Shown here piece by piece: positions 1 through 62,109 of a stretch of DNA of 64,000 nt. A model generated the notes under the pieces. The model had not been told where the DNA came from, did no database searches, and saw only the letters and a list, made by a program, of their open reading frames with translations. Both the position numbers and the translations under genes were made by a program. Position 1 is the first letter of the stretch, and each line of letters starts with the position of its first letter. The stretch is from Paramoeba atlantica (Eukaryota > Protista > Discosea): contig CDRNVI010000149.1 of assembly GCA_977017575.1 (NCBI GenBank), positions 186,001-250,000 on the forward strand, written 5' to 3'.

Positions 1-788
<788 letters not shown>

Positions 789-2949
789 TCAGCGAAAACC
801 TGAATTGAAGCCCTTGACTAAAAATAGCGCGTTATTTTTTAGCGCTCTACTTTTTTTTTCGTTTGTTTCTGTTTTTTTTTTTGCGTTTTGTTGTTTTTTT
901 GTGGTGGGCGAGAGGAGAAGAGAGCGCTCTCTTCTTTCTGTTTGTTTTTGTTTGTTTTTGTTTTGTTTTGTGTGTTATTTGTTTTGTTTGTTTTGCCAAT
1001 CTCACCAACCACCATCACGCAGTTTTGTGGTGGTGTGTGTTTTGTGTTTTTTTGTGTTGTGTGAGGGTTTGTTCTTCTCCTCACACCCCCTCCGCCCCCT
1101 TCTCTCTCTCTCACCTCATCTTTTAACACACAGAGGAGAGAGGAGAAGGGAAAAAGAACCTCTCTCTCTCTTTGATGAAGGGAAATGAAAAGCAAAGAAT
1201 GCGAAAAGAGGTGGTTTGTGTCTCTCTCTTCCTCTCCTTTTTCTCTCAAACACACTTCTCTTCTCTCGCACTCCTGACCATTTTTTCCCCCTTTCTCTCT
1301 CTCTTTCCCCTCTCTCTCTCTTTCCCCTCTTTCTTTTCTCTCTTCCCTTTCCTTCACACAGTTTTCAAGGGAACAAAACATAAAAGTGGGGGAAAAAGGG
1401 TGGTGTTTTGTTTCACCCATATAAAAGACAAATATTAGGGAACACGACAATCGAAAGTGGAGGGATAGTGGGTGAAAGGGGGAGAGAAAATCACCAGAGA
1501 GACATCCAATAGAGAGAGTGATGTTTGTGGTGGATGATCTCTCTTCTCTTTTTGGCCCTCTTGAGACGACGATCTTGTGTGTGTGTGTTCTGAGGAGAGG
1601 CCTTTCTTCGAGCGTGTTTTGGCGATGATGGTGTAGTGTTTGGTGGATACTTCTCTTTTGAAAATGTTGGTTATTCATGAAGAACTTTACCGCTGATATA
1701 TGTTTCTGCTCTCTCTCTCTCTCCTTTCCCAAAAAATCCATGTTTGGTGTTGTTGGTGTGTGATTAGACCCTCTCTCCTCCCTCCTCTCTCTCTCTCCCC
1801 ACTCTCGCTGCTGCGCCTTATTCCTCTGTTTCTTATCATTTTTTTGAGGAGTAAAAGCTCTTTCTTCTTAGCTTTCTTCTTTTGGAGGGTTCCTTTTGGA
1901 TTGGTGACAGTGATATTGGATCGGATCTCTCTCCTCTTCTTTAAGTGGTATGTCCTATCATAATGAAATCAAATGTCTTCTTTCTCGAAAAAAATGTGAC
2001 TTTCTTGACAAAGGTATACCACGTATCGGACCCTGTATGTATCGTTATACTACACACACAACACACAACACACAAGAAGATTTTTTGCCAACACGCTGAG
2101 AAGGTTACTTTTTTGCATGGATTATTTTTTCTGTCTGTGTTTGGTGTGTTTTATTGTTTACTTTTTTTGTATTTGTATCTTTGTGTTTTAAAAATGGGGT
2201 GTGTTAATGTTGTTTTTGTGTTTTTGTTTTGTTTTGTTTTTTGAGAAGAGGAAGGGAAGGAAGGAAGGAAGGAAGGAAGGGTGTGTGAAAAATTTATTAA
2301 TTTGTACAAAAAACAGTTTGTTGTCTCTCAAAGCCAAATTCTCAAATTGAAAAAAAGACAGGAATCCCCAGATTCCACTCCAAAAGTTCATCAAGAAGAA
2401 AACAGACAAAAAGAATGAAAAGAATTTAGATCACCAAGATTGGTGTATTAATTGAAAGAAGTGTCCCGTCCATTTTGAGGGGAATACGAAATCGTTGTAA
2501 ATGATTGATGTCCATTTTAAAAGAAGGTTTTGTGTTCTTGTTAATTTGTTCTTGTTGAACTTGTTTTTTTATTATTTGTTTTATTTTTTGCTTTTGGTAT
2601 TTTTGGTATTTGTTTTTGTTCTTTTCTTTTTTGTGGTGATTGGTTTGGTTTGGTTTGGTTGGTTTGTCTGTTATTATTGGAAAGAGTGTTTTTGTTTTTG
2701 TATTAGTTATTAGTATTTAATTAATTAAAATTCTCTGATACTAAAATCTGATTCTTCCCCCTCCCCCTTCTCTTAACTAGTGTGAGGACATCTTTTTTGT
2801 TTCCTTTGTTACAAAGACCTCCTTCCAATCACAAGCCTTTTTGAAAATATGAGTGGCACAGGTTTCCCTTTATTTTGTGTTTTGTTGTTTCAGTGTTTTG
2901 TGTTTGGTTTGTTAGTTATTTTGATTGTGTGGATTTGTTTATCTTTTTT

Positions 2950-3990
2950 AGTATGATGTGATTATTCTGTTGTGTTGGTTTGTTGTTGGTTTATTGTTGG
3001 TTTGTTGGTTTGTTGGTTTGTTTGTCGTTTTGTTTGTTGTTGTTGTGTCATTCAGTGTTACTTTTGTTTTGTTTGTTGTGATTGTGATTGTTGTGATTTG
3101 TGATTGTTGTGATTGTAGTTAAGTTATAGTTATTGTTGCTGTTGTTTATGATTGTTTATTGTTTTTCTTGTTGTTTGTTGTTTATTGTTTGTTGTTGTTT
3201 GTTGTTTATTGTTTGTTGTTGTTTGTTGTTGTTTGTTGTTATTATGATTATTGGTTTGTGATTGTGATTGCAATTGTTATGATTGTTGTTACTATTTTTT
3301 ATAATCAATTATTGTTATTATTGTATTGTTATGATTGTTGTTGTTATTTGATTGTTATTGCTTTTATTATTATTGTTAATTGTTAAATTGTTAATAATAG
3401 AATGGGGACATCTTTGTTTCTTTGTTATAAGACTCCCTCCACAGGCCTTTTTTTCTATTACTCCGTTCCCAACAATCCCGACTATTGTGCCACCGCCAGG
3501 TTTTTCTCTTTTTTCCTTCTTTTATTTTGTGCTTGTTTTTGTTTTTGTTAATGGTATTGCTGTTGTGGTGGTGATGATATTTTGATTGTGTTGTTATTTG
3601 TTGTTATTTGTTATTTGTTATTGGTATTCTTGTTGTTCTTGTTCTTGTTGTTGTTATTGTTGTTATTATTGTTGTTATTCTTGTTGTTATTCTTGTTGTT
3701 ATTATTGTTTTATTGTTATTTGTGATTGTTATTATTTGTTATTTGTATTGTTATTTGTTATTTGTATTGTTATTTGTTATTTGTTATTGTTGTTCTTGTT
3801 GTTCTTGTTCTTGTTATTATTATGGTTGTTATGGTTGTTATTGTTGTTATTTGTTGTTATTTGTTGTTATTATTGTTGTTATTTGTTGTTATTGTTGTTA
3901 TTATTGTTATTTGTTATTGATATTTGTTGTTGATATTTGTTATTGTAATTGTTATTGTTGATTTTGTTTTTTTGTGTTGTGGTTATGTTG
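2950..3990. repeat. Degenerate (GTT/ATT)n trinucleotide low-complexity tract
   Basis: About 1 kb of gttgtt/attatt/ttgtta mosaics, which produce spurious V/L/I/C-rich ORFs. Confidence 0.9.
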
Positions 3991-5239
3991 TGTTCGTACA
4001 CAAAAAAAGAGAGAGAGTGTGTGGAATCATTAAGACAAAGATGTGGTTGGGGATTTCTGGAGGGAGTCAGCCACATATAATGGTTGGTTGGTTCTTTTTG
4101 TTCTTTTGTAATATTTATATTTCCGTTTTGTTGTAATATTAGTTGGTTAATTTGTCTTCTGTTTTTTGTTTGGAGGGGGTGTGTGTATTTAATTAGTGCT
4201 GTTTAAGTTAAATATTATTATTGTTAATTGTTTTTGGTCACTTTGTTGGTAGTTGGTACATCAGTGTTTTTGTGTATTGGTTGTGTGTGTAAGTTGGTTG
4301 TGTGTTGTCTTGTGTACACACATTTTTCAAGGTTTATTGTTTGTTTGAACCAAACAATCAAAAATGACAATAAGGTTTTCTTTTTTTTTTTGTCTTTCTT
4401 TTGTTTCGTCCTTTTTGTTCTTTTTTTTTTTGTTCTTTTTGTTCTTTTTTTTTTTCTTTCTCCCTTTTTGTTCTTTTTCTTTTTTTTTTACTCTGTTCTA
4501 TAATTTTTTTGATGTTGGTGTTGGTCTTGTGTGGAATGTGCTTTTTCTAGAAGAGGGTTTTAATTGATGTGCAGGTTTTTCTTTTGATTTTTCTTTTGAT
4601 TTTTCTTTTGATTTTTTTTTTGATTTTTTTTTGATTTTTTGGTTTCTCTTTTTTTTTAAGATCCAAAAAGTTTCCACAGACACACTATGGTTTTTCTCTT
4701 TCTGTTTTTTGTTAATATAAGTGAGGTTTGCTTTGTGGGGACGGTTTGGGTTTTCCTTTTCGATAAAATGGTGAATGTAGGTGTTTTTGTGGGAATTGTG
4801 TACCTTTTTTCTGTGGTGGCGCACCTTGTTTTTTTTTTTTGGAGGGGGGGGGGTCTTTAATTGGGAGGGGGTTTGTTCAAGTTTTTAGAAAGGAATAACA
4901 CACTGTTTTGTTGAGATTTAATAAGACTAAAAAGGTTATAATATTTGTTCACATAAACAAATGTTGCAGCCTCTTTGGGAATTTTCCAGAATGGACATGA
5001 AGATTGGGTTTTGACTCGCACACCACCTCCATAAATACTTTGTGATGGGTAAATTAGCCACAGTAGCACCAATTTTGTTGGGGGGGGGGTGGGGGACATA
5101 TTGCCAAAATACATAATTTCCACAATTATTTTTCATTTGGTTGGTGACTTGAAGGAAGGGGGGGGGAGGTTTTCGTGGTGGTGTCGTATCTCCCTCAATC
5201 CTTTTTAAACCCATTTTTTTTTTCGATTTTTATCAAATT

Positions 5240-5312
5240 GCCTCCGTAGCTCAGTCGGTAGAGCGCTAGACTCTTAATCTAGTGGCCGCGGGTTCGAGCC
5301 CCGCCGGGGGCT
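5240..5312 (+). tRNA. tRNA-Lys (CTT)
   Basis: Full cloverleaf: GCCTCCG/CGGGGGC acceptor, GCTC/GAGC D stem, CTAGA-CTCTTAA-TCTAG anticodon arm, GCGGG-TTCGAGC-CCCGC T arm; followed by an oligo-T Pol III terminator. Confidence 0.96.
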
Positions 5313-5836
5313 GTTTTTTTTTTTTTCTTTTTTTCTTTTTTTCTTTTTCCTTCTTTCTTTTCTTTTTTCTTTTCTTTTTCCTTCTTTCTTTACTTTTTTT
5401 CTTTCAAAGGTGGTTTTTTCTCTTCTTTTCCTCTCTCTTTTTCTCTTCTCTTTTTTTTATTTTTTTTTCATGAACTTGGTCTGAACTGAACTGCTTCTTT
5501 GTTGCTCAAAGGTTTTTCTCTCTTTCTTTCTCTTTTCTTTTTTTCCTTTTTTTTCTTTTTTTTTTTTCTTTTTTTCTTTTTTTTTCTTTTTTTTTTCTTT
5601 TTCTTTTTTCTTTTTTCTTTTTTCTTTTTTCTTTTTCTTTTTCTTTTCTATTTCTTTTTTTTTGAGCTTGGTCTCGCTCTTTTTTTCTCTTTTTTCCCCT
5701 TTTTTTCCTTTTTTTTTCTTTTTTTCCTTTCCTTTTTTCTTTCTTTTTTTCTCTTTTTCTTTTCTTTTTCTTTTTCTTTTTCTTTTTTTCTTTTTTCTTC
5801 CTTTCCTTTTTCTTTTTCTTTTTCTTTTTTTTTTTA
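5313..5836. repeat. Polypyrimidine (T/C) low-complexity tract; similar tracts at 8470-9060, 10370-10545 (purine on +), 16630-17040, 26700-27060, 32130-34680
   Basis: Nearly pure T/C runs; source of the F/S/L-rich and K/E/R-rich pseudo-ORFs. Confidence 0.9.
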
Positions 5837-8340
5837 GAGCGAGCGTGCGAAAAGATTGCGCACCAGCCTTTTTGAAGGTGCGAAAAGAAGAGGTCTTTTT
5901 TGACCCTTGATTTACCTCTTCTTTTTGGATTTGTGTTTGGGATTGGTCAAAATCAGTGAAAGTCCACTCGCAATTGGGTCCAGGTGTGGGGACGTAATAA
6001 AGTCACCAGAGCAATGGTTGTCACTTGGTTCATTTTTCTGTTTCCATTCTTTTGGAATTTTTTCGAAAAAAAATGGTCTCTGTTGAAGAAAGCGATGTTT
6101 CTCTGCAACAAAAAGCATTATCAATTCGTTTTTCAGTTTTGTGAGTTTTGTCGCACTTCTGATAATCTTGCTCAAAAAGCATGAAGGTTTCTTCGTCAAC
6201 ATCCCTGGGAAGTTTGCACCTACCTCACGCTCACGGATTGAGTCGAGTATTAATCGTAAGATTCGTGGTCGAGGTCTGGAACTCTGGCAGAAGAGGTGTG
6301 ACTGGCGAACTCTTCGGGTGTGTTTTGGCCCACATTGTTCTGGATGAGAGGATTAATTTTCCGCTTGATAATCCAACATTTATTGAAGGTTCGTATCTGG
6401 AGTCAATTCCTCGATCTCCTTTGCGAAAAGGTTTCCTACGTGTGGTGCCATCAAATGGCAAGATGCTCCGGCGGAATCCTTTTGGGTCTTGCTGGCCCAA
6501 ACCCAGAAAGACAGAATTTTCCTTGGCCTCAACGAACATGTGAACCATGATGGAAAGTCAGTTGCTGAGGAGATAACAACAATGCTCCAAGAGATGCAAA
6601 ATCTCGCAAAGGAATTTCCAGAGACACAGGAATTTGTCCAATCTCTGTCTCTTTCTTCATTCTGTGGTGTCATGGGGGACCACACCAATGTAAATCGGAG
6701 TGTGGTGGCAGGAATTAGGAATTATCGAAAGAGATTGAAAGTCCCCTTGTGTGCAGCTGGGTTGTTTTGCCCACAAATGTGATTTGGTTGAAGAATCTTT
6801 TTTGAAGGCTTTGCGGAAAAAATCAAAAGAATGACTCTCTGCCCTCTTCCTCTTCTTCCTCTTCTTGTTCCTCTTCTTCCTCTTCTTGTTCCTCTTGTGT
6901 TCCTCTTTCTCACCCCCTTCAACCAGTGCTCTCAGTGCTTCAAGTTTCCCCTGCTTTGGTTACCACCACAAGAGCCCTGTATCCTCACTTCAGATGAAGA
7001 AGGTGATGAGTCCTGGGAGGATGATATTGAGCATATTTGTGTGGAGAAAGGACCTGAGCTTGGCTTCCCTCCAAAGACTGATGAACCTGAATATGGAATG
7101 AAGGCTCCTGGAAAAGACGATGACTTGAATACACACTCTGCAACTCAGTTTCTCTATCGAATCACAAAGGCATTATCGTTGACCTCAAAGGCAGGAAATC
7201 GCTATGGTCACTCTGAAACCTTTTCCCAGTGGTGCATAGTGAAAGGGTTTCAGTGTCATTTAACCCCCCCCCCTTCATTCAAATCGATTCTTGGTGTATT
7301 CTTATAACGCATATGCCATCTACAATGATCTGCATGTGTATTGGAATTTTCTTCAAGAATGTTTGGAGGACACTTGGACTCGCCAATTTCTCCTTGCCTC
7401 ACTCTCATCTCCATTGATGTGCCACGAACTCTGATTGTTGGGGTTGTTTCATTATTTCTTTGGTTTTTTTTTTCATTTTTATTTTCATTTTCATTTTCAT
7501 TTTTAATTTCATTTTTATTTTTATTTTTATTTTTATTTTTATTTTTCTTTTTCTTTTTCTTTTTCTTTTTCTTTTTCTTTTTATTAATTTTTCTTTGAAA
7601 TTCTTCACAGGCCCTCCTCTGACCTTTACCCTTTCGGTTCTTACAATTGAAGAGAGTGCTGCTCTTTGGAAAGAAGTTGAACGACATTTCATTGTTTTTA
7701 CCCCCGCCTCACTCACCCATCCGCAACCTTCAACAACTTATCTTTTTCACAAATTGTGGGATTATGTTGGTTTTTTATTTGAGAAAAAAATCCTCCCATT
7801 CAGGTCACAAGTGATGGTTGAAAAAGAGAAAGTTTGGGAACGCTTGGAAGGGGGAATTTTGCTGAACTGGAGCCCATACAGAGATAACAAGGTCTTTCAT
7901 TTGTGTTTGATCTCAGCACTGAAGGAAGTTCAAAAGGTAAGATTTCCTTTTTTTTTTCTCTTTTCTTCTTTCTTTTCTTTTACTAATTTTTAATTTTTTT
8001 GTTTCAAATTGGCAAAGGGTACTTGGGGAATGGATCTCTTTCAAGTGTCCCTTCTTCTCTCTCTTCCCTCCCAGCTGATAATCTGGAACTGGAACTGGAA
8101 CGTGTGTTTGCAAAAGTCAAGAAGGAGAAGGATACCCATGCGAATCACTTGAACACTTCGTCGTTAAAAGGACACATTATGTGGAAAGAAAACTTGATCG
8201 ATTGAACACCTTCATTGAGTTTGTCAGAAAATTCGCTTCAGCGAAAAGGGTTGTCAATTCATCACGCTGGAAAAAGGTCTGAACTCTTGAATAGATTGTT
8301 GGGACTCCTTTGATAAATGTTTTTGACTCTCTTGGTTGTT
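5830..8340 (+). pseudogene. hAT-like DDE transposase relic, intron-containing and frameshifted
   Basis: Motifs in hAT order across shifting frames: IFLGLNEHVNHDGKSVAEEI, GVMGDHTNVN, GCFAHKCDL (CxxH at 6763-6774), RFLVYSYNAYAIY, and C-terminal LPADNLE(LE)LERVFAKV. Intron acceptor ttcacag at 7610; donor gtaaga at 7937. Element ends not found. Confidence 0.65.
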
Positions 8341-9049
8341 CTCCCACAATAAAATTCATTTCTTTTGACTCATTCTCTTTCCTTCTCCCAAAACTCCACA
8401 CAAAACCAGCGCCCTTCCAAAAAAAGTGGTGCGCAAAGTCAAAAAGACCCTTACTACTGGCCCAGGCTACCTCTTTTTTCTTTTTTCTTCTTTTCTTCTT
8501 TTTTCTTCTTTTTTCTTCTTTTTCTTTTCTTTTTCTTTTCTTTTTTTCTTTCTTTTTTTCTTTCTTTTTTTTAAAACCTGATTATATTGAACTACCTTCT
8601 TGTCGATTGACTCTTTCAAAAGTTTTTCTCTTTTCTTTTTCTCTTTTCTTTCTCTTTTCTTTCTTTCTTTCTTTTTCTTTTTCTTTCTTTCTTTCTCTTC
8701 TTTCCTTTTTCTTTTTTTTCTTTTCTTTTTCTTTTTTTTTTTCTTTTTTTTTTTCTTTTTTCTTTTTCTTTTTTCTTTTTTTTAAACCGGTGTGTGTGTC
8801 AAACTACTTCTCATCAATCTTTCTCTCTTTTCTATTTCTCTTTTCTTTTTAAAACTTAGTTTGGGTCTTTATCAATTTGCTCTTTCAGAAGTTTTTCTTT
8901 CTTCTTTTTTTTCTTTTCTTTTTCTTTTTCTTTTTCTTTTTCTTTTTTTCTTTTTTCTTTCTTTTCGTTTCTTCCTTTTTTCTTTTCTTTTCTTCTTTTT
9001 TTCTTTTCGTTCTTTTTCGTTCTTTTTCGTTCTTTTTCGTTCTTTTTCA

Positions 9050-10892
9050 TTCTTTTTTCTTCTTTTTCCACCACAGCCGATTTTTGAGAAAACGCGAATT
9101 TTAAAAATAAAGTTCGGGCCCATTTTTTTGGTAGCAATCCGGTGTTTAAAGGTGTCATAAGCAACTTTTTGATGGTTGTTAAGGTGGTAATTTTTTTTTT
9201 TTTTTCAGATATTGGATTCACAAACCCAGCACCCATAATTCAAAATCCATTTTCATTTTTCAAAGACATATGATAATATGTCGCTGCTCGAATACCAGCA
9301 ACAGAGCCAGGACTGTGTTTCCAAATGTAACCCAACTCGGTAAGTCCAAAACTAGGTGTATTTTCCCATCCAAATCCTAAATAAAAGAGAAGAGAAAGCC
9401 CAATGTCTTTTTTGTCACAATGAAGAACTGTCCCATGAGCAATTGAGAGCCAGAATTCTTCAATCAAGCGGAAAATCTTTGTTGAAAGAGTCATTTGCTG
9501 TCCGGTTGCATCAAACTTTTTGTGAATGTCTTCAATGCATTCTCTCTGTTTATCAAATATTGGTGGGGGTGGGGAAGATGAAGATGTCTCTTTGATTGTT
9601 GAAGAAACCCATTTTTCGAAACGTAACTCAAAGATCGCATATCCTCCGAAAAAGAGATTCCACAAATGGAACAATCATATCATTTGTTTGGCCTGCTTGA
9701 ACATATTCCCGAATCGGATTTGCTTGCTTTGCATGAATTCCCATCGTTAACAAACACCATCCTCGACAATTTCTCTTTGTTTGATTAAATATAAAACATT
9801 GGAGGATTGAGAGCTCATATACCTCCTCAGGAGATCCAACCGATTCCAACCAAAACATATCCTTCAAACCACTCTCCGATTTAAAATAAACATTTCCGGT
9901 CAATTCCTTCAATAAATTCTCATCTTTCAAAAGGTCTTGTTGGGTATTACAACCACCTGGATTCGCCAATTTTTGATAAAAATCTTCAGTGGCACCAGGA
10001 AAATGGGCCTTCCAGCTCGAATCTGAGAGGCGATCTAATGGGATCCTGTTCACATCATCAAAGAGAATTGTTGTTGTTTGAGAATTTTGTTTTGGAACTT
10101 CAAAAGATTTAAAAAGAACTGGAACTGGCTCTGCTGGTTTGATTTCAAAATAAGTTCTCATCAACGACAGTGCTTTTTCCCTGGTTTCCTTGTCAGAATA
10201 ATGTGGTCGTCCTGGTTTTGAATAATCCATCGGTTTTGAGAGTCCATGTGAACCACTTGCTTTCTTTCGACTCATTCTTCCAACAATTTCAGAAACCTGG
10301 ATATTGTGTGTGGAGTGGATTCAAAAAAAGATATTTATAAAAAATGAGAATAATAATAATAAAAAAAAGAGGAAGGAAAAAAAAGAGGAAGGAGAAAAAA
10401 GGAGAAAAAAAAAGAGAAAAAAAAGGAAGAAAAAAAAGGGAGAAAAAAGGGAGAAAAAAGAAAGAAAAAAAAAGAAAGAAAAAAAGAAAAGAAAAAAAAA
10501 GGGAGAAAAAAGAAAGAAAAAAAAAGAAAGAAAAAAAGAAAAGCGAGATGATCGAACGGAAACACAACCTTCTTTTCAAGCACTTCCCAAGACACTAAGC
10601 TCTTATTTGTTTTTACAAGTTCTCTTACAGTCCAAAAACGAAAACGATCAAATAATAAAGGTGAAGGAGGAGAGTAGAAACTATCCTCATATGATGGCTC
10701 TGAAAGACGAACAGGAGGTAACAATAATGTCGAGAGAGGAAAAGGGTTTTTTGGCGATAATGTCCATGAAGAAGAAGAGAAAGAATCATGGGTAATTGAT
10801 TGACAGAGCAAAACATCCATTTCTAATCTCCTTCTTTTCTTTCTTTCTGATCGAATTTGTTTTTTTCTTTTGAGATTGAATTTGGTGAGCAT
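9050..10892 (-). pseudogene. TET/JBP-family 2-oxoglutarate/Fe(II) dioxygenase-like gene, spliced and disrupted
   Basis: Predicted exon 1 10892-10629 (basic NLS-like start), GT-AG intron 10628-10297, then ORFs 10275-9628 and 9674-9240. Core LHCDKKDIGLSLLFYLG...SPGSVAGIRAATYYH: His 9420-9422, Asp 9414-9416, His 9270-9272, and TGA (9240-9242) at the expected 2OG-binding Arg, followed in frame by IMGAGFVN. The 3' end is uncertain. Confidence 0.75.
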
Positions 10893-11087
10893 TTTGAAAA
10901 AAAGAATCAAAAATTTGAAAGAAAGGAAAGAAAGTAGCAATTTTCGTATTGGATTCTTTTCAGATTACTTTTTTTCTTTTTTTTTATTAGAAAAATACAG
11001 CCAAAACGATTTTGTTCAAGCACTTTGTTTTTTTTTTGTTTTTTTTTTGCTTTTTGTTTTTTGTTTTTTGTTTTTTGTTTTTCTCAA

Positions 11088-11771
11088 ATGTCTGAACAAA
11101 CTGCTCACTCTGTTCAAACCTGAACTCCTTCTCGAAAACTCCTTGAGGCAGATGAATCTTTCTTTAAAAGAGGAAACTCTGTTCCATATTGCTACATCTC
11201 TCTTGAACCCTCATCACATCAAAGCGTAAACAAACCAAAAACTACAAACCAAAAGAAAAACCAAAAAGAAAAGTGTCCTCCTTGTGCTCTTTCTCTTTTG
11301 GAGAGCAATATTGCAAGCAAGTTTTCATGTGATACAATTGTTGATTCTGTTGTTATTGAGCTTGATCGGATTGCCCATGATCTTTTTTCAAAAATTCCCT
11401 CGACTGCTTGTAGTATGCGAATCTATCGAACAAAGGTCAATGCAGTTCTGTTTGAACTCCTCATCATCCCTCATCTTTTGAGAAGTGGTGGCGACCTTTC
11501 TCCTCGCAAGAAGTCAGCGCCAGTTTTTCTGATCCAATTTTACGAAACAAAAACTTTTGAACAAATTTTTTCAGGACTTGCATCAAAGGGACTCTTCAAC
11601 CCAATGACGAAAAAATTCAAAAATGGTCAAAAGATGTGGATTGTCGCTCATAAAAAGTATCCGGTTGTATGGAGATTTTCTGCAAATCTTGGAACTCTTG
11701 CAGTTCATTTTTTTGTTCAAGGATGGACAAAAGGAGGACTTCCAATCAATGATCTTTATATCTCAAATTAA
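11088..11771 (+). pseudogene. Orphan two-exon gene (~200 aa, ORF X) with one in-frame TGA, function unknown
   Basis: ATG 11088 (MSEQTAHSVQT*TPSRKLLEADESFFKRGNSVPYCYISLEPSSHQS), phase-0 GT-AG intron 11226-11303, then the non-low-complexity ORF to 11771. Confidence 0.5.
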
Positions 11772-49913: not shown

Positions 49914-52900
49914 TAAAAAAAGAAAATAAAAAATAAATCAAATACATCAATTCAAAACAATTAAGAAATTTGATTGAACCAACTTAAAAAATATCATAGA
50001 TCTGAAACATAAATTCAAAAAATATCACAGAATCAGAAAATAAATTAAGGAATTGCATTCAATATGGAGACATAATTAAGAAATTGAAATTACAAAAAAT
50101 TAATGTAAAAAAAAGAAAATAAAAAATAAATCAAATACATCAATTCAAAACAATTAAGAAATTTGATTGAACCAACTTAAAAAATATCATAGATCTGAAA
50201 CATAAATTCAAAAAATATCACAGAATCAGAAAATAAATTAAGGAATTGCATTCAATATGGAGACATAATTAAGAAATTGAAATTACAAAAAATTAATGTA
50301 AAAAAAAGAAAATAAAAAATAAATCAAATACATCAATTCAAAACAATTAAGAAATTTGATTGAACCAACTTAAAAAATATCATAGATCTGAAACATAAAT
50401 TCAAAAAATATCACAGAATCAGAAAATAAATTAAGGAATTGCATTCAATATGGAGACATAATTAAGAAATTGAAATTACAAAAAATTAATGTAAAAAAAA
50501 GAAAATAAAAAATAAATCAAATACATCAATTCAAAACAATTAAGAAATTTGATTGAACCAACTTAAAAAATATCATAGATCTGAAACATAAATTCAAAAA
50601 ATATCACAGAATCAGAAAATAAATTAAGGAATTGCATTCAATATGGAGACATAATTAAGAAATTGAAATTACAAAAAATTAATGTAAAAAAAAGAAAATA
50701 AAAAATAAATCAAATACATCAATTCAAAACAATTAAGAAATTTGATTGAACCAACTTAAAAAATATCATAGATCTGAAACATAAATTCAAAAAATATCAC
50801 AGAATCAGAAAATAAATTAAGGAATTGCATTCAATATGGAGACATAATTAAGAAATTGAAATTACAAAAAATTAATGTAAAAAAAAGAAAATAAAAAATA
50901 AATCAAATACATCAATTCAAAACAATTAAGAAATTTGATTGAACCAACTTAAAAAATATCATAGATCTGAAACATAAATTCAAAAAATATCACAGAATCA
51001 GAAAATAAATTAAGGAATTGCATTCAATATGGAGACATAATTAAGAAATTGAAATTACAAAAAATTAATGTAAAAAAAAGAAAATAAAAAATAAATCAAA
51101 TACATCAATTCAAAACAATTAAGAAATTTGATTGAACCAACTTAAAAAATATCATAGATCTGAAACATAAATTCAAAAAATATCACAGAATCAGAAAATA
51201 AATTAAGGAATTGCATTCAATATGGAGACATAATTAAGAAATTGAAATTACAAAAAATTAATGTAAAAAAAAGAAAATAAAAAATAAATCAAATACATCA
51301 ATTCAAAACAATTAAGAAATTTGATTGAACCAACTTAAAAAATATCATAGATCTGAAACATAAATTCAAAAAATATCACAGAATCAGAAAATAAATTAAG
51401 GAATTGCATTCAATATGGAGACATAATTAAGAAATTGAAATTACAAAAAATTAATGTAAAAAAAAGAAAATAAAAAATAAATCAAATACATCAATTCAAA
51501 ACAATTAAGAAATTTGATTGAACCAACTTAAAAAATATCATAGATCTGAAACATAAATTCAAAAAATATCACAGAATCAGAAAATAAATTAAGGAATTGC
51601 ATTCAATATGGAGACATAATTAAGAAATTGAAATTACAAAAAATTAATGTAAAAAAAAGAAAATAAAAAATAAATCAAATACATCAATTCAAAACAATTA
51701 AGAAATTTGATTGAACCAACTTAAAAAATATCATAGATCTGAAACATAAATTCAAAAAATATCACAGAATCAGAAAATAAATTAAGGAATTGCATTCAAT
51801 ATGGAGACATAATTAAGAAATTGAAATTACAAAAAATTAATGTAAAAAAAAGAAAATAAAAAATAAATCAAATACATCAATTCAAAACAATTAAGAAATT
51901 TGATTGAACCAACTTAAAAAATATCATAGATCTGAAACATAAATTCAAAAAATATCACAGAATCAGAAAATAAATTAAGGAATTGCATTCAATATGGAGA
52001 CATAATTAAGAAATTGAAATTACAAAAAATTAATGTAAAAAAAAGAAAATAAAAAATAAATCAAATACATCAATTCAAAACAATTAAGAAATTTGATTGA
52101 ACCAACTTAAAAAATATCATAGATCTGAAACATAAATTCAAAAAATATCACAGAATCAGAAAATAAATTAAGGAATTGCATTCAATATGGAGACATAATT
52201 AAGAAATTGAAATTACAAAAAATTAATGTAAAAAAAAGAAAATAAAAAATAAATCAAATACATCAATTCAAAACAATTAAGAAATTTGATTGAACCAACT
52301 TAAAAAATATCATAGATCTGAAACATAAATTCAAAAAATATCACAGAATCAGAAAATAAATTAAGGAATTGCATTCAATATGGAGACATAATTAAGAAAT
52401 TGAAATTACAAAAAATTAATGTAAAAAAAAGAAAATAAAAAATAAATCAAATACATCAATTCAAAACAATTAAGAAATTTGATTGAACCAACTTAAAAAA
52501 TATCATAGATCTGAAACATAAATTCAAAAAATATCACAGAATCAGAAAATAAATTAAGGAATTGCATTCAATATGGAGACATAATTAAGAAATTGAAATT
52601 ACAAAAAATTAATGTAAAAAAAAGAAAATAAAAAATAAATCAAATACATCAATTCAAAACAATTAAGAAATTTGATTGAACCAACTTAAAAAATATCATA
52701 GATCTGAAACATAAATTCAAAAAATATCACAGAATCAGAAAATAAATTAAGGAATTGCATTCAATATGGAGACATAATTAAGAAATTGAAATTACAAAAA
52801 ATTAATGTAAAAAAAAGAAAATAAAAAATAAATCAAATACATCAATTCAAAACAATTAAGAAATTTGATTGAACCAACTTAAAAAATATCATAGATCTGA

Positions 52901-55900
52901 AACATAAATTCAAAAAATATCACAGAATCAGAAAATAAATTAAGGAATTGCATTCAATATGGAGACATAATTAAGAAATTGAAATTACAAAAAATTAATG
53001 TAAAAAAAAGAAAATAAAAAATAAATCAAATACATCAATTCAAAACAATTAAGAAATTTGATTGAACCAACTTAAAAAATATCATAGATCTGAAACATAA
53101 ATTCAAAAAATATCACAGAATCAGAAAATAAATTAAGGAATTGCATTCAATATGGAGACATAATTAAGAAATTGAAATTACAAAAAATTAATGTAAAAAA
53201 AAGAAAATAAAAAATAAATCAAATACATCAATTCAAAACAATTAAGAAATTTGATTGAACCAACTTAAAAAATATCATAGATCTGAAACATAAATTCAAA
53301 AAATATCACAGAATCAGAAAATAAATTAAGGAATTGCATTCAATATGGAGACATAATTAAGAAATTGAAATTACAAAAAATTAATGTAAAAAAAAGAAAA
53401 TAAAAAATAAATCAAATACATCAATTCAAAACAATTAAGAAATTTGATTGAACCAACTTAAAAAATATCATAGATCTGAAACATAAATTCAAAAAATATC
53501 ACAGAATCAGAAAATAAATTAAGGAATTGCATTCAATATGGAGACATAATTAAGAAATTGAAATTACAAAAAATTAATGTAAAAAAAAGAAAATAAAAAA
53601 TAAATCAAATACATCAATTCAAAACAATTAAGAAATTTGATTGAACCAACTTAAAAAATATCATAGATCTGAAACATAAATTCAAAAAATATCACAGAAT
53701 CAGAAAATAAATTAAGGAATTGCATTCAATATGGAGACATAATTAAGAAATTGAAATTACAAAAAATTAATGTAAAAAAAAGAAAATAAAAAATAAATCA
53801 AATACATCAATTCAAAACAATTAAGAAATTTGATTGAACCAACTTAAAAAATATCATAGATCTGAAACATAAATTCAAAAAATATCACAGAATCAGAAAA
53901 TAAATTAAGGAATTGCATTCAATATGGAGACATAATTAAGAAATTGAAATTACAAAAAATTAATGTAAAAAAAAGAAAATAAAAAATAAATCAAATACAT
54001 CAATTCAAAACAATTAAGAAATTTGATTGAACCAACTTAAAAAATATCATAGATCTGAAACATAAATTCAAAAAATATCACAGAATCAGAAAATAAATTA
54101 AGGAATTGCATTCAATATGGAGACATAATTAAGAAATTGAAATTACAAAAAATTAATGTAAAAAAAAGAAAATAAAAAATAAATCAAATACATCAATTCA
54201 AAACAATTAAGAAATTTGATTGAACCAACTTAAAAAATATCATAGATCTGAAACATAAATTCAAAAAATATCACAGAATCAGAAAATAAATTAAGGAATT
54301 GCATTCAATATGGAGACATAATTAAGAAATTGAAATTACAAAAAATTAATGTAAAAAAAAGAAAATAAAAAATAAATCAAATACATCAATTCAAAACAAT
54401 TAAGAAATTTGATTGAACCAACTTAAAAAATATCATAGATCTGAAACATAAATTCAAAAAATATCACAGAATCAGAAAATAAATTAAGGAATTGCATTCA
54501 ATATGGAGACATAATTAAGAAATTGAAATTACAAAAAATTAATGTAAAAAAAAGAAAATAAAAAATAAATCAAATACATCAATTCAAAACAATTAAGAAA
54601 TTTGATTGAACCAACTTAAAAAATATCATAGATCTGAAACATAAATTCAAAAAATATCACAGAATCAGAAAATAAATTAAGGAATTGCATTCAATATGGA
54701 GACATAATTAAGAAATTGAAATTACAAAAAATTAATGTAAAAAAAAGAAAATAAAAAATAAATCAAATACATCAATTCAAAACAATTAAGAAATTTGATT
54801 GAACCAACTTAAAAAATATCATAGATCTGAAACATAAATTCAAAAAATATCACAGAATCAGAAAATAAATTAAGGAATTGCATTCAATATGGAGACATAA
54901 TTAAGAAATTGAAATTACAAAAAATTAATGTAAAAAAAAGAAAATAAAAAATAAATCAAATACATCAATTCAAAACAATTAAGAAATTTGATTGAACCAA
55001 CTTAAAAAATATCATAGATCTGAAACATAAATTCAAAAAATATCACAGAATCAGAAAATAAATTAAGGAATTGCATTCAATATGGAGACATAATTAAGAA
55101 ATTGAAATTACAAAAAATTAATGTAAAAAAAAGAAAATAAAAAATAAATCAAATACATCAATTCAAAACAATTAAGAAATTTGATTGAACCAACTTAAAA
55201 AATATCATAGATCTGAAACATAAATTCAAAAAATATCACAGAATCAGAAAATAAATTAAGGAATTGCATTCAATATGGAGACATAATTAAGAAATTGAAA
55301 TTACAAAAAATTAATGTAAAAAAAAGAAAATAAAAAATAAATCAAATACATCAATTCAAAACAATTAAGAAATTTGATTGAACCAACTTAAAAAATATCA
55401 TAGATCTGAAACATAAATTCAAAAAATATCACAGAATCAGAAAATAAATTAAGGAATTGCATTCAATATGGAGACATAATTAAGAAATTGAAATTACAAA
55501 AAATTAATGTAAAAAAAAGAAAATAAAAAATAAATCAAATACATCAATTCAAAACAATTAAGAAATTTGATTGAACCAACTTAAAAAATATCATAGATCT
55601 GAAACATAAATTCAAAAAATATCACAGAATCAGAAAATAAATTAAGGAATTGCATTCAATATGGAGACATAATTAAGAAATTGAAATTACAAAAAATTAA
55701 TGTAAAAAAAAGAAAATAAAAAATAAATCAAATACATCAATTCAAAACAATTAAGAAATTTGATTGAACCAACTTAAAAAATATCATAGATCTGAAACAT
55801 AAATTCAAAAAATATCACAGAATCAGAAAATAAATTAAGGAATTGCATTCAATATGGAGACATAATTAAGAAATTGAAATTACAAAAAATTAATGTAAAA

Positions 55901-58900
55901 AAAAGAAAATAAAAAATAAATCAAATACATCAATTCAAAACAATTAAGAAATTTGATTGAACCAACTTAAAAAATATCATAGATCTGAAACATAAATTCA
56001 AAAAATATCACAGAATCAGAAAATAAATTAAGGAATTGCATTCAATATGGAGACATAATTAAGAAATTGAAATTACAAAAAATTAATGTAAAAAAAAGAA
56101 AATAAAAAATAAATCAAATACATCAATTCAAAACAATTAAGAAATTTGATTGAACCAACTTAAAAAATATCATAGATCTGAAACATAAATTCAAAAAATA
56201 TCACAGAATCAGAAAATAAATTAAGGAATTGCATTCAATATGGAGACATAATTAAGAAATTGAAATTACAAAAAATTAATGTAAAAAAAAGAAAATAAAA
56301 AATAAATCAAATACATCAATTCAAAACAATTAAGAAATTTGATTGAACCAACTTAAAAAATATCATAGATCTGAAACATAAATTCAAAAAATATCACAGA
56401 ATCAGAAAATAAATTAAGGAATTGCATTCAATATGGAGACATAATTAAGAAATTGAAATTACAAAAAATTAATGTAAAAAAAAGAAAATAAAAAATAAAT
56501 CAAATACATCAATTCAAAACAATTAAGAAATTTGATTGAACCAACTTAAAAAATATCATAGATCTGAAACATAAATTCAAAAAATATCACAGAATCAGAA
56601 AATAAATTAAGGAATTGCATTCAATATGGAGACATAATTAAGAAATTGAAATTACAAAAAATTAATGTAAAAAAAAGAAAATAAAAAATAAATCAAATAC
56701 ATCAATTCAAAACAATTAAGAAATTTGATTGAACCAACTTAAAAAATATCATAGATCTGAAACATAAATTCAAAAAATATCACAGAATCAGAAAATAAAT
56801 TAAGGAATTGCATTCAATATGGAGACATAATTAAGAAATTGAAATTACAAAAAATTAATGTAAAAAAAAGAAAATAAAAAATAAATCAAATACATCAATT
56901 CAAAACAATTAAGAAATTTGATTGAACCAACTTAAAAAATATCATAGATCTGAAACATAAATTCAAAAAATATCACAGAATCAGAAAATAAATTAAGGAA
57001 TTGCATTCAATATGGAGACATAATTAAGAAATTGAAATTACAAAAAATTAATGTAAAAAAAAGAAAATAAAAAATAAATCAAATACATCAATTCAAAACA
57101 ATTAAGAAATTTGATTGAACCAACTTAAAAAATATCATAGATCTGAAACATAAATTCAAAAAATATCACAGAATCAGAAAATAAATTAAGGAATTGCATT
57201 CAATATGGAGACATAATTAAGAAATTGAAATTACAAAAAATTAATGTAAAAAAAAGAAAATAAAAAATAAATCAAATACATCAATTCAAAACAATTAAGA
57301 AATTTGATTGAACCAACTTAAAAAATATCATAGATCTGAAACATAAATTCAAAAAATATCACAGAATCAGAAAATAAATTAAGGAATTGCATTCAATATG
57401 GAGACATAATTAAGAAATTGAAATTACAAAAAATTAATGTAAAAAAAAGAAAATAAAAAATAAATCAAATACATCAATTCAAAACAATTAAGAAATTTGA
57501 TTGAACCAACTTAAAAAATATCATAGATCTGAAACATAAATTCAAAAAATATCACAGAATCAGAAAATAAATTAAGGAATTGCATTCAATATGGAGACAT
57601 AATTAAGAAATTGAAATTACAAAAAATTAATGTAAAAAAAAGAAAATAAAAAATAAATCAAATACATCAATTCAAAACAATTAAGAAATTTGATTGAACC
57701 AACTTAAAAAATATCATAGATCTGAAACATAAATTCAAAAAATATCACAGAATCAGAAAATAAATTAAGGAATTGCATTCAATATGGAGACATAATTAAG
57801 AAATTGAAATTACAAAAAATTAATGTAAAAAAAAGAAAATAAAAAATAAATCAAATACATCAATTCAAAACAATTAAGAAATTTGATTGAACCAACTTAA
57901 AAAATATCATAGATCTGAAACATAAATTCAAAAAATATCACAGAATCAGAAAATAAATTAAGGAATTGCATTCAATATGGAGACATAATTAAGAAATTGA
58001 AATTACAAAAAATTAATGTAAAAAAAAGAAAATAAAAAATAAATCAAATACATCAATTCAAAACAATTAAGAAATTTGATTGAACCAACTTAAAAAATAT
58101 CATAGATCTGAAACATAAATTCAAAAAATATCACAGAATCAGAAAATAAATTAAGGAATTGCATTCAATATGGAGACATAATTAAGAAATTGAAATTACA
58201 AAAAATTAATGTAAAAAAAAGAAAATAAAAAATAAATCAAATACATCAATTCAAAACAATTAAGAAATTTGATTGAACCAACTTAAAAAATATCATAGAT
58301 CTGAAACATAAATTCAAAAAATATCACAGAATCAGAAAATAAATTAAGGAATTGCATTCAATATGGAGACATAATTAAGAAATTGAAATTACAAAAAATT
58401 AATGTAAAAAAAAGAAAATAAAAAATAAATCAAATACATCAATTCAAAACAATTAAGAAATTTGATTGAACCAACTTAAAAAATATCATAGATCTGAAAC
58501 ATAAATTCAAAAAATATCACAGAATCAGAAAATAAATTAAGGAATTGCATTCAATATGGAGACATAATTAAGAAATTGAAATTACAAAAAATTAATGTAA
58601 AAAAAAGAAAATAAAAAATAAATCAAATACATCAATTCAAAACAATTAAGAAATTTGATTGAACCAACTTAAAAAATATCATAGATCTGAAACATAAATT
58701 CAAAAAATATCACAGAATCAGAAAATAAATTAAGGAATTGCATTCAATATGGAGACATAATTAAGAAATTGAAATTACAAAAAATTAATGTAAAAAAAAG
58801 AAAATAAAAAATAAATCAAATACATCAATTCAAAACAATTAAGAAATTTGATTGAACCAACTTAAAAAATATCATAGATCTGAAACATAAATTCAAAAAA

Positions 58901-61767
58901 TATCACAGAATCAGAAAATAAATTAAGGAATTGCATTCAATATGGAGACATAATTAAGAAATTGAAATTACAAAAAATTAATGTAAAAAAAAGAAAATAA
59001 AAAATAAATCAAATACATCAATTCAAAACAATTAAGAAATTTGATTGAACCAACTTAAAAAATATCATAGATCTGAAACATAAATTCAAAAAATATCACA
59101 GAATCAGAAAATAAATTAAGGAATTGCATTCAATATGGAGACATAATTAAGAAATTGAAATTACAAAAAATTAATGTAAAAAAAAGAAAATAAAAAATAA
59201 ATCAAATACATCAATTCAAAACAATTAAGAAATTTGATTGAACCAACTTAAAAAATATCATAGATCTGAAACATAAATTCAAAAAATATCACAGAATCAG
59301 AAAATAAATTAAGGAATTGCATTCAATATGGAGACATAATTAAGAAATTGAAATTACAAAAAATTAATGTAAAAAAAAGAAAATAAAAAATAAATCAAAT
59401 ACATCAATTCAAAACAATTAAGAAATTTGATTGAACCAACTTAAAAAATATCATAGATCTGAAACATAAATTCAAAAAATATCACAGAATCAGAAAATAA
59501 ATTAAGGAATTGCATTCAATATGGAGACATAATTAAGAAATTGAAATTACAAAAAATTAATGTAAAAAAAAGAAAATAAAAAATAAATCAAATACATCAA
59601 TTCAAAACAATTAAGAAATTTGATTGAACCAACTTAAAAAATATCATAGATCTGAAACATAAATTCAAAAAATATCACAGAATCAGAAAATAAATTAAGG
59701 AATTGCATTCAATATGGAGACATAATTAAGAAATTGAAATTACAAAAAATTAATGTAAAAAAAAGAAAATAAAAAATAAATCAAATACATCAATTCAAAA
59801 CAATTAAGAAATTTGATTGAACCAACTTAAAAAATATCATAGATCTGAAACATAAATTCAAAAAATATCACAGAATCAGAAAATAAATTAAGGAATTGCA
59901 TTCAATATGGAGACATAATTAAGAAATTGAAATTACAAAAAATTAATGTAAAAAAAAGAAAATAAAAAATAAATCAAATACATCAATTCAAAACAATTAA
60001 GAAATTTGATTGAACCAACTTAAAAAATATCATAGATCTGAAACATAAATTCAAAAAATATCACAGAATCAGAAAATAAATTAAGGAATTGCATTCAATA
60101 TGGAGACATAATTAAGAAATTGAAATTACAAAAAATTAATGTAAAAAAAAGAAAATAAAAAATAAATCAAATACATCAATTCAAAACAATTAAGAAATTT
60201 GATTGAACCAACTTAAAAAATATCATAGATCTGAAACATAAATTCAAAAAATATCACAGAATCAGAAAATAAATTAAGGAATTGCATTCAATATGGAGAC
60301 ATAATTAAGAAATTGAAATTACAAAAAATTAATGTAAAAAAAAGAAAATAAAAAATAAATCAAATACATCAATTCAAAACAATTAAGAAATTTGATTGAA
60401 CCAACTTAAAAAATATCATAGATCTGAAACATAAATTCAAAAAATATCACAGAATCAGAAAATAAATTAAGGAATTGCATTCAATATGGAGACATAATTA
60501 AGAAATTGAAATTACAAAAAATTAATGTAAAAAAAAGAAAATAAAAAATAAATCAAATACATCAATTCAAAACAATTAAGAAATTTGATTGAACCAACTT
60601 AAAAAATATCATAGATCTGAAACATAAATTCAAAAAATATCACAGAATCAGAAAATAAATTAAGGAATTGCATTCAATATGGAGACATAATTAAGAAATT
60701 GAAATTACAAAAAATTAATGTAAAAAAAAGAAAATAAAAAATAAATCAAATACATCAATTCAAAACAATTAAGAAATTTGATTGAACCAACTTAAAAAAT
60801 ATCATAGATCTGAAACATAAATTCAAAAAATATCACAGAATCAGAAAATAAATTAAGGAATTGCATTCAATATGGAGACATAATTAAGAAATTGAAATTA
60901 CAAAAAATTAATGTAAAAAAAAGAAAATAAAAAATAAATCAAATACATCAATTCAAAACAATTAAGAAATTTGATTGAACCAACTTAAAAAATATCATAG
61001 ATCTGAAACATAAATTCAAAAAATATCACAGAATCAGAAAATAAATTAAGGAATTGCATTCAATATGGAGACATAATTAAGAAATTGAAATTACAAAAAA
61101 TTAATGTAAAAAAAAGAAAATAAAAAATAAATCAAATACATCAATTCAAAACAATTAAGAAATTTGATTGAACCAACTTAAAAAATATCATAGATCTGAA
61201 ACATAAATTCAAAAAATATCACAGAATCAGAAAATAAATTAAGGAATTGCATTCAATATGGAGACATAATTAAGAAATTGAAATTACAAAAAATTAATGT
61301 AAAAAAAAGAAAATAAAAAATAAATCAAATACATCAATTCAAAACAATTAAGAAATTTGATTGAACCAACTTAAAAAATATCATAGATCTGAAACATAAA
61401 TTCAAAAAATATCACAGAATCAGAAAATAAATTAAGGAATTGCATTCAATATGGAGACATAATTAAGAAATTGAAATTACAAAAAATTAATGTAAAAAAA
61501 AGAAAATAAAAAATAAATCAAATACATCAATTCAAAACAATTAAGAAATTTGATTGAACCAACTTAAAAAATATCATAGATCTGAAACATAAATTCAAAA
61601 AATATCACAGAATCAGAAAATAAATTAAGGAATTGCATTCAATATGGAGACATAATTAAGAAATTGAAATTACAAAAAATTAATGTAAAAAAAAGAAAAT
61701 AAAAAATAAATCAAATACATCAATTCAAAACAATTAAGAAATTTGATTGAACCAACTTAAAAAATAT
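49914..61767. repeat. Tandem satellite, 193-bp monomer, ~61.4 copies, ~19% GC
   Basis: GATCT recurs at 49999, 50192 and 50385 (period 193). One BglII site per unit; no variant monomers noticed by eye. Confidence 0.98.
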
Positions 61768-62109
61768 TTTTAAAATGAAAAATAAATTTAAAACATATCA
61801 TAAAATTAAAAAATAAATAAAAACATTTTATTCAATATGGAAACATAATTAAGAAATTGAAATTACAAAAAAATTAATATTAAAAAAATCACTTTTAATA
61901 ATTTCTTGTTCATTCTCTATTTCAAATGTTCAAGTGGAAGAAGGCAAACAACTTCCCACAAACATTTCCTAATAGTGTAAGTCTTGATAACAAGTCAAAC
62001 TATTGTATGAATAAACTAAAAACTGATTTGAGTGGAGAGGTGTGAGGTGGTGGTGGATAAAATTATGTTGTGCTGTCCAGACTTGAAATTTTTCAGAATG
62101 CCCATACTT

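Follow-up and report, generated by a model that had tools for sequence, protein, structure and literature searches.

Introduction

Fungal DNA transposons that carry a TET gene have reportedly been described by Iyer et al. in 2014. TET/JBP-carrying transposons have been documented only in fungi and are thought to erase their own silencing methylation. In a published survey, TET-carrying DNA transposons came from fungi only; the carriers include elements of the CMCT clade (EnSpm, ESTA, Plavaka), with 5′-CA termini and an HHpred similarity to RAG1, and very distant 'TET/JBP-like' transposon proteins that are recognisable by structure only were also described (Kojima 2025, PMC12730594). Here, we analyse a TET-like gene of the protist Paramoeba atlantica. 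It is carried by the minus strand of a 64,000-nucleotide stretch of contig CDRNVI010000149.1 (positions 186,001 to 250,000), hereafter the window. The window is AT-rich, repeat-rich eukaryotic DNA with a G+C content of 32.9%. Our results indicate that positions 9117-10275(-) very probably hold a dead copy of the gene for a TET/JBP-fold Fe(II)/2-oxoglutarate (2OG) dioxygenase of very divergent sequence, originating from a three-gene mobile unit.

The residues that matter for the comparison are known from NgTet1 and human TET2. The C1-carboxylate of 2OG is bound by NgTet1 Arg224 or TET2 Arg1261 and its C5-carboxylate by NgTet1 Arg289 or TET2 Arg1896. The N4 group of 5-methylcytosine (5mC) is read by Asp234/Asn1387 and its N3 by His297/His1904, while the base is stacked by Phe295/Tyr1902 (PMC7854593).

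Results

An H-x-D-x-x-D motif (9420-9405), a distal His and a TGA codon are found in one frame on the minus strand of the window. The first His is encoded by CAT 9420-9422, the Asp of H-x-D by GAC 9414-9416 and the Asp at +5 by GAC 9405-9407. The distal His (CAT 9270-9272) stands exactly 50 codons after the first one. The TGA (9240-9242) follows 10 codons later, at the position of the Arg that binds the 2OG C5-carboxylate in NgTet1 and TET2. Past the TGA, the remainder of the open reading frame (ORF; 9117-9239) comprises the last beta-strand, I-M-G-A-G-F-V-N, a length-variable poly-A tract and a non-conserved tail. An earlier note on this DNA had claimed the motif, both intervals and the in-frame IMGAGFVN; all were recovered in a single frame.

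The earlier note had also stated that NgTet1 has the same spacing. This was verified using a profile built from 17 family members. Against 177,635 PDB sequences, the sole match of the profile was NgTet1 (4LT5, 5CG8; E 0.014-0.023). The alignment was gap-free over 63 residues, with H-x-D, D(+5) and His(+50) in register and the R/K column (+60) on the Arg. In this hidden Markov model (HMM) register, the codon equivalent to NgTet1 Phe295 is at 9222-9224, and an Asn (9216-9218) occupies the position of His297. This agreement is not due to chance, and the motifs are conserved in 34 diverged representatives.

These 34 proteins are the matches, all unannotated, that were obtained when an HMMER profile of two subfamilies of the genome was searched against 1.84 billion representative proteins. 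Other searches were less productive: phmmer with a single paralogue found nothing relevant in the PDB, and five near-identical ENA proteins were all that a word-based search for homologues yielded. One ENA protein, P0004 (236 aa), is a gene call joining the N-terminal third of a TET-like protein to an RNase-H-like tail, and probably comes from a copy disrupted by the insertion of a retroelement. The metagenomic relatives that were looked up sit on short, eukaryote-like metagenome contigs. Among the neighbours of four of them (L054, L065, L066, L067), on such short contigs, none was in common with the window element. On L054, a separate upstream ORF (305-652) matches the N-terminus (residues 1-100) of a longer relative, P0008. 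The metagenomic relatives would accordingly have a spliced gene extended at its N-terminus by a region that is absent from, or undetected in, the copies of the present genome.

The family alignment conserves R-G-T-x-x-H-x-D, Y-x-G-F and H-M-S. In the 17-sequence alignment, no row departs from His262 and Asp264, and only one full-length row lacks the distal His. All three residues of the Fe(II) triad H-x-D...H, aligned to that of NgTet1, are intact in the window copy. R or K is observed at the Arg289-equivalent position in 15 of the 16 rows covering the site, with F or Y six residues on. Thus, a basic residue kept in the family is lost from the window copy, its codon being TGA. The Arg located five residues before the first His is also a family consensus, and the window copy has His instead (CAT, 9435-9437, as seen by codon comparison of the copies). 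As for base recognition, D/N at +5, F/Y at R+6 and mostly N at R+8 appear in register with Asp234, Phe295 and His297, respectively, Asn replacing His at the last position.

An AlphaFold2 model was built on a 35-row alignment (pLDDT, the predicted local distance difference test, 84.8; pTM, the predicted template modelling score, 0.86). A first model, from a 4-row alignment, had a pLDDT of 36 and was discarded. Using Foldseek, the 21 best PDB matches were all TET-clade structures, with E-values of 2e-11 for CcTet of Coprinopsis cinerea, 6e-9 for NgTet1 and 2e-8 for Chlamydomonas CMD1; the first outsider was FTO (6.5e-5). In the VIA-align comparison (all-against-representatives), NgTET1 ranked first with a Z score of 18.9 over 226 residues and a root-mean-square deviation of 3.5, before CcTet (18.7), human TET2 (16.4) and CMD1 (14.4). 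Next came ALKBH1 at 11.9. AlkB-type enzymes did not exceed this value and prolyl hydroxylases were at about 10. Fold neighbours in the ESM-Atlas include a fungal cluster with a partial Tet_JBP annotation, as well as the basidiomycete family PF20515 and Tet_JBP fusions of phages. The best matches are therefore nucleic-acid oxygenases, and not the non-nucleic-acid 2OG oxygenases that the earlier note had named as contrary evidence. Overall, the predicted fold and the residue register with NgTet1 support the family as a TET/JBP-fold nucleic-acid dioxygenase, as had been proposed, forming a divergent branch beyond the reach of the Pfam model.

With NgTet1 (PDB 4LT5, 5CG8/9), the window family shares a compact, single-domain organisation of similar size and identical spacing of H-x-D, D at +5, His at +50, Arg at +60 and an aromatic residue at +66. 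However, sequence identity is only about 16-18%, and the Pfam Tet_JBP model misses the window family. The N3-reading position (R+8) is Asn and not His, and subfamily B has Lys in place of Arg. Further differences are the repeated, probably mobile unit that carries the window family and the pseudogene state of the window copy. CMD1 and TET2 have the same fold and the same base-recognition logic, with D/N facing N4 and aromatic stacking, but neither is transposon-borne; CMD1 has no functional C5-carboxylate Arg and uses vitamin C, whereas TET2 contains a large insert in addition to its Cys-rich domain.

The TET-like ORF of the window is split between two frames. The N-terminal half (215 aa, 9631-10275, ATG 10273-10275) is in frame A, and the catalytic, C-terminal half (9243-9671) is in frame B. 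In the genome (45.7 Mb, 248 contigs), more than 30 matches to the TET-like ORF were obtained. One paralogue, L003 on contig C177, is 96% identical to the window ORF. As read in the assembled contig sequence, the window has a T5 homopolymer on the coding strand (plus-strand A-run, 9649-9653), where L003 has T4 (DNA alignment columns 677-683). This +1 insertion explains why the two halves are in different frames. It also accounts for the TGA at 9628-9630 that closes the N-terminal ORF. Indeed, the same bases are present in L003, where the intact frame reads ATC-TTT-GAG-TTA. Therefore this stop was exposed by the frameshift, and the earlier suggestion that it is a second mutated CGA codon is wrong.

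At the Arg289-equivalent codon, also taken as assembled, TTT-TGA-ATT in the window is aligned with TTT-CGA-ATT in L003. Six full-length copies of subfamily A were compared at this site: three have CGA, two have TGA (window and L005) and one has CAA (L004). Hence, both possible CpG-transition products of CGA occur. The proposed conversion of the 2OG-binding Arg codon CGA into TGA by a C>T transition at a CpG is thus borne out by three paralogues with CGA, and the paralogues have Arg at this site or, in subfamily B, Lys. At the Arg224-equivalent codon, only L004 has CGT. The window and three other copies have CAT (His); L005 and the deletion derivatives described below have TGT (Cys). The CGA>TGA change is therefore a real inactivating change, as claimed, although it is not the only killing lesion: it stands beside the +1 frameshift and CGT>CAT, and any of the three may have come first.

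None of the six subfamily-A copies is fully intact. L003 itself has CGA>TGA at the Arg23 codon near its N-terminus, in common with L004 and L005. In subfamily B, which is 34% identical, two copies are fully open (L020/L021, with L020:1435-2445 on the minus strand, and L022), with Lys at the Arg289-equivalent site; their genomic context showed no informative family other than a retrotransposon fragment. Another naturally open member, P0001, retains both arginines. A genetic code in which TGA is sense was considered and rejected, TGA closing 17 of 40 long open frames examined in the genome, as an ordinary stop does. Judged from its lesions, the copy in the window is a dead pseudogene of an ordinary kind.

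The earlier note had drawn the gene up to 10892. Coding is unproven for this upstream part. The ORF starts with the ATG at 10273-10275; a minus-strand ORF found upstream of it (10338-10940), considered as an N-terminal exon, had no significant similarity to the N-termini of the relatives. A low-complexity stretch located upstream of the ATG (10259-10577) is precisely missing from the C178 copy (L005/L059). An intron was rejected here: AAGTG microhomology is present at both sides of the junction and both splice readings are out of frame. This points to a deletion mediated by microhomology rather than to splicing. A run search for the window stretch retrieved four DNA-type sequencing runs, all from one study, and no RNA run.

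Decay was measured on six full-length copies in each subfamily, majority rule being used only to polarise substitutions. About 85% of the differences between copies are C>T/G>A, without strand bias, and transversions account for about 0.5%. The rate per site is 0.78-0.88 for CpG, against 0.20-0.23 for other C/G and 0.01-0.04 for A/T. In terms of trinucleotide context, 75-100% of NCG sites are changed, as compared to 11-36% in other C contexts. The decay is visible in every subfamily-A copy examined, and every premature stop in the copies is a C>T/G>A product (CGA>TGA, TGG>TGA/TAG or CAG>TAG). The observed/expected CpG ratio is 0.38 for the window and falls to 0.05-0.16 in some stretches. Therefore, the TGA at 9240-9242 is one scar of a repeat-directed C>T process, neither singular nor the sole lethal lesion. 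The process resembles repeat-induced point mutation (RIP) as well as methylation-driven decay in that C>T changes affect both strands, are confined to repeats and create TGA/TAG stops from CGA, TGG and CAG. It differs from RIP by its preference for NCG, as opposed to CpA in Neurospora, and no domain of the C5 DNA methyltransferase (DNMT) or RID type was detectable.

The TET-like gene belongs to a repeated three-gene arrangement. The middle gene (11124-11768, plus strand) is a 215-aa open frame of no known family. The third gene (11749-14018, minus strand) is degenerate in the window. Both recur, in the same order, at the same seven loci as the subfamily-A copies. In the window, the third gene is broken by insertions of 7, 4, 1, 1 and 4 bp and by a 406-bp insertion (~13354-13759). 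Because the C143 copy has a continuous 597-aa frame (L056:6146-7936), most of these interruptions are read as frameshifting indels and not introns. The language-model features of this 597-aa protein are nearest to the RAG1 RNase-H/Transib-like and Plavaka transposase clusters (0.86-0.91). We treat this as a lead that the third gene might encode a RAG1/Transib/Plavaka-type (CMCT-clade) transposase.

An internally deleted derivative, in which the upstream region runs straight into the TET-like ORF's C-terminal half, was found at at least nine loci (within L010-L019, e.g. G000:C151:19185-22352, C204, C170, C208, C149:445921, C174, C159, C199, C153 and C188). These copies are 96.5-98.5% identical, have unrelated flanks and share one sharp common 5′-CA terminus, starting with 5′-CACCGCATCCG. 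The derivative is non-autonomous and retains an open frame of 120-151 aa. Nine such loci served to define the terminus. In the window, its inner part is at 9079-9112 and the terminus itself is a few bases lower, ~50 bp past the 3′ end of the TET-like gene. Overall, these data support a mobile element having the TET-like gene as its terminal gene.

Compared with fungal TET+ DNA transposons, the likeness lies in a TET/JBP-fold gene multiplied along with a DNA-transposase-like gene. The difference is the three-gene layout with an uncharacterised middle gene, absent from the Kojima survey (PMC12730594). With the fungal PU, AG and PE types, the likeness of the window family is structural, no sequence similarity being demonstrated. 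The family and its carrier apparently form a divergent, non-fungal variant of the known TET-plus-transposon theme.

Positions 1-12731 of the window are 100% identical, all lesions included, to G000:C149:162084-174814. This copy of at least 12.7 kb is located 23,917 bp upstream on the same contig. The identity reflects a duplication, segmental or tandem, of very recent date, or else one made by the assembly. Elsewhere in the window, positions 49915-61888 form a ~12-kb tandem satellite with a 193-bp period, ~99.7% identity between copies, a G+C content of ~19-22% and zero CpG. In the C143 copy of the element, a fully open 1,231-aa Ty3/gypsy-type polyprotein is inserted (L056:942-4634); it contains zinc knuckles, a protease, a reverse transcriptase, an integrase and a chromodomain-like tail.

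Finally, the genome has Tet_JBP genes of its own, detected by PF12851 at four other loci with 125-140 bits. One is a fusion of leucine-rich repeats with Tet_JBP in an 893-aa frame (L050/L051, G000:C3:216687-220160 and C30). The other, of ~1,045 aa, fuses Tet_JBP to an SNF2 helicase, an architecture like that of JBP2 (L052/L053, C39 and C40). The presence of each gene on two contigs suggests haplotigs or a recent duplication. The kinetoplastid thymine hydroxylases JBP1 and JBP2 are of the same superfamily as the window family. The JBP-like genes of the genome align in register with the window motifs; HHalign gave E 0.004-0.015 at low probability, which is weak and consistent only. They are long and apparently single-locus; the window family, by contrast, consists of short, repeat-borne genes with no PF12851 score.

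Discussion

The most plausible history of the locus can be described as follows. The intact protein would have had ~340-390 aa and bound iron through H-x-D...H. The 2OG cofactor would have been held at its C1-carboxylate by the Arg that precedes the first His by five residues, and at its C5-carboxylate by the Arg or Lys that follows the second His by ten. A flipped-out pyrimidine would have been recognised by D/N at +5, the aromatic residue at R+6 and the Asn at R+8, a layout that corresponds to the one used by NgTet1 and TET2 for 5mC. The gene would be the terminal one of the repeated three-gene unit, whose largest gene is transposase-like. By analogy with fungal TET-carrying DNA transposons, we infer that the enzyme most likely oxidised a silencing base modification on the DNA of the element itself. 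In the window, the enzyme appears to have died three times, by the +1 T frameshift, by replacement of the C1-carboxylate Arg with His (CGT>CAT) and by conversion of the C5-carboxylate Arg codon into a stop (CGA>TGA). The last two changes would be products of a genome-wide, two-strand, CpG-preferring C>T process. After its inactivation, the copy would have been duplicated, 23.9 kb away, with at least 12.7 kb of flanking DNA.

Several results weigh against this reading. Pfam scans, including Tet_JBP (PF12851), of the window pieces, of the open paralogues L003 and L020 and of ten diverged relatives gave no match with E up to 1-10. The HMM search that had been proposed as a check was thus negative for all members scanned. 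Sequence-level links to TET are only marginally significant and membership is mainly based on the predicted structure. For the transposase assignment, Pfam and PDB sequence searches of the middle and third genes gave no match. An inverted copy of the terminus, which would have marked the other end of the element, was sought and not found, and no terminal inverted repeat (TIR), target-site duplication (TSD) or second terminus was found. In addition, homology of window 1-9000 to C177 and C149b runs 9 kb past the proposed terminus, so that segmental duplication, as opposed to transposition, accounts for some of the copies. Finally, a six-frame genome search with PF00145 (C5 DNA methyltransferase) found none at E<=10, intron-split or very divergent genes being able to escape such a search; the same method readily found the Tet_JBP genes of the genome.

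This last result bears on the substrate. With no C5 DNA methyltransferase detectable, the readings '5mC oxidase' and 'methyl-CpG deamination' are both weakened. From the earlier proposal of a putative 5mC oxidase, the TET/JBP fold is retained, while 5mC as the substrate is what we infer and thymine or N6-methyladenine (6mA) is possible. Similarly, from the proposed deamination at a methylated CpG, C>T at CpG is retained and 'methylated' is unproven. The enzyme could instead have been a JBP-like thymine hydroxylase, making 5-hydroxymethyluracil or a base-J precursor, or a bifunctional 6mA/5mC enzyme like CcTet. The diagnosis of a pseudogene would be unchanged. In addition to the PF00145 result, this alternative draws on the JBP-like character of the Pfam-positive genes of the genome, one being fused to SNF2 as in JBP2, and on CcTet, which is among the two best structural matches and which reportedly acts on both 5mC and 6mA. 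On the other hand, the residues that read 5mC in NgTet1 and TET2 are matched by D/N at +5, the aromatic residue at R+6 and the polar residue at R+8, and the decay of repeats by C>T focused on CpG is what 5mC classically leaves behind. We consider another substrate unlikely, though it deserves attention.

The three genes might also belong to an ordinary host family that is not transposon cargo and forms a block, multiplied by segmental duplication, within repeat-rich DNA (pericentromeric or subtelomeric). The 9 kb of homology beyond the terminus shared by the window, C177 and C149b, the 100%-identical duplicate 23.9 kb away and the negative search for a TIR or TSD are all in line with such a block. 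A block of this sort is however difficult to reconcile with at least nine deletion-derivative copies having unrelated flanks and one sharp common terminus, with a neighbour gene showing transposase-like features and with repeat-type hypermutation in all copies. We therefore regard a host gene family as improbable and favour the mobile unit.

That the likeness to TET merely reflects the generic double-stranded beta-helix (DSBH) of a non-nucleic-acid 2OG oxygenase, such as a prolyl or lysyl hydroxylase or a small-molecule oxygenase, is very improbable. Many DSBH enzymes do have Z scores of 8-12 against the model, and Pfam Tet_JBP is silent. However, the four TET-type structures, with 226-275 residues covered, outscore every other one by 2.5 to 7 Z units, and TET-clade Foldseek E-values are better by three to six orders of magnitude. 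Moreover, NgTet1 is the sole PDB match of the sequence profile and the base-contacting positions are conserved.

It is hardly credible that the TGA does not terminate, through assembly error, selenocysteine, programmed readthrough or a TGA-sense code, and that the gene is functional: TGA does predominate among the in-frame stops of the copies, but 17 of 40 long open frames end in it, each TGA traces back to CGA or TGG via the prevailing C>T/G>A process, TAG/TAA stops and indels are also present, the 100%-identical duplicate and L005 share the TGA, and the window copy has a frameshift and has lost its second Arg besides.

With the pseudogene of a TET/JBP-fold dioxygenase as the preferred reading, a broader proposal can be put forward tentatively, and with more doubt than confidence. 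This would be the first family of TET-carrying DNA transposons outside fungi, a protist RAG1/Transib-like element using a TET-fold counter-defence against a system that silences and mutates DNA through base modification. If true, a TET-fold family on such an element would extend this arms-race strategy past fungi. It would also add to the TET/JBP family a new, compact and Pfam-invisible branch for enzymology. If the counter-defence reading is true, CpG hypermutation without a recognisable C5 methyltransferase implies either an unknown cytosine-modifying or cytosine-deaminating defence or a substrate other than 5mC. The lack of a detectable DNA methyltransferase thus makes the nature of the C>T process and the substrate of the enzyme a concrete, testable question. 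Both cofactor-holding Arg codons contain a CpG, and both were struck by the C>T process that the enzyme may have evolved to prevent.

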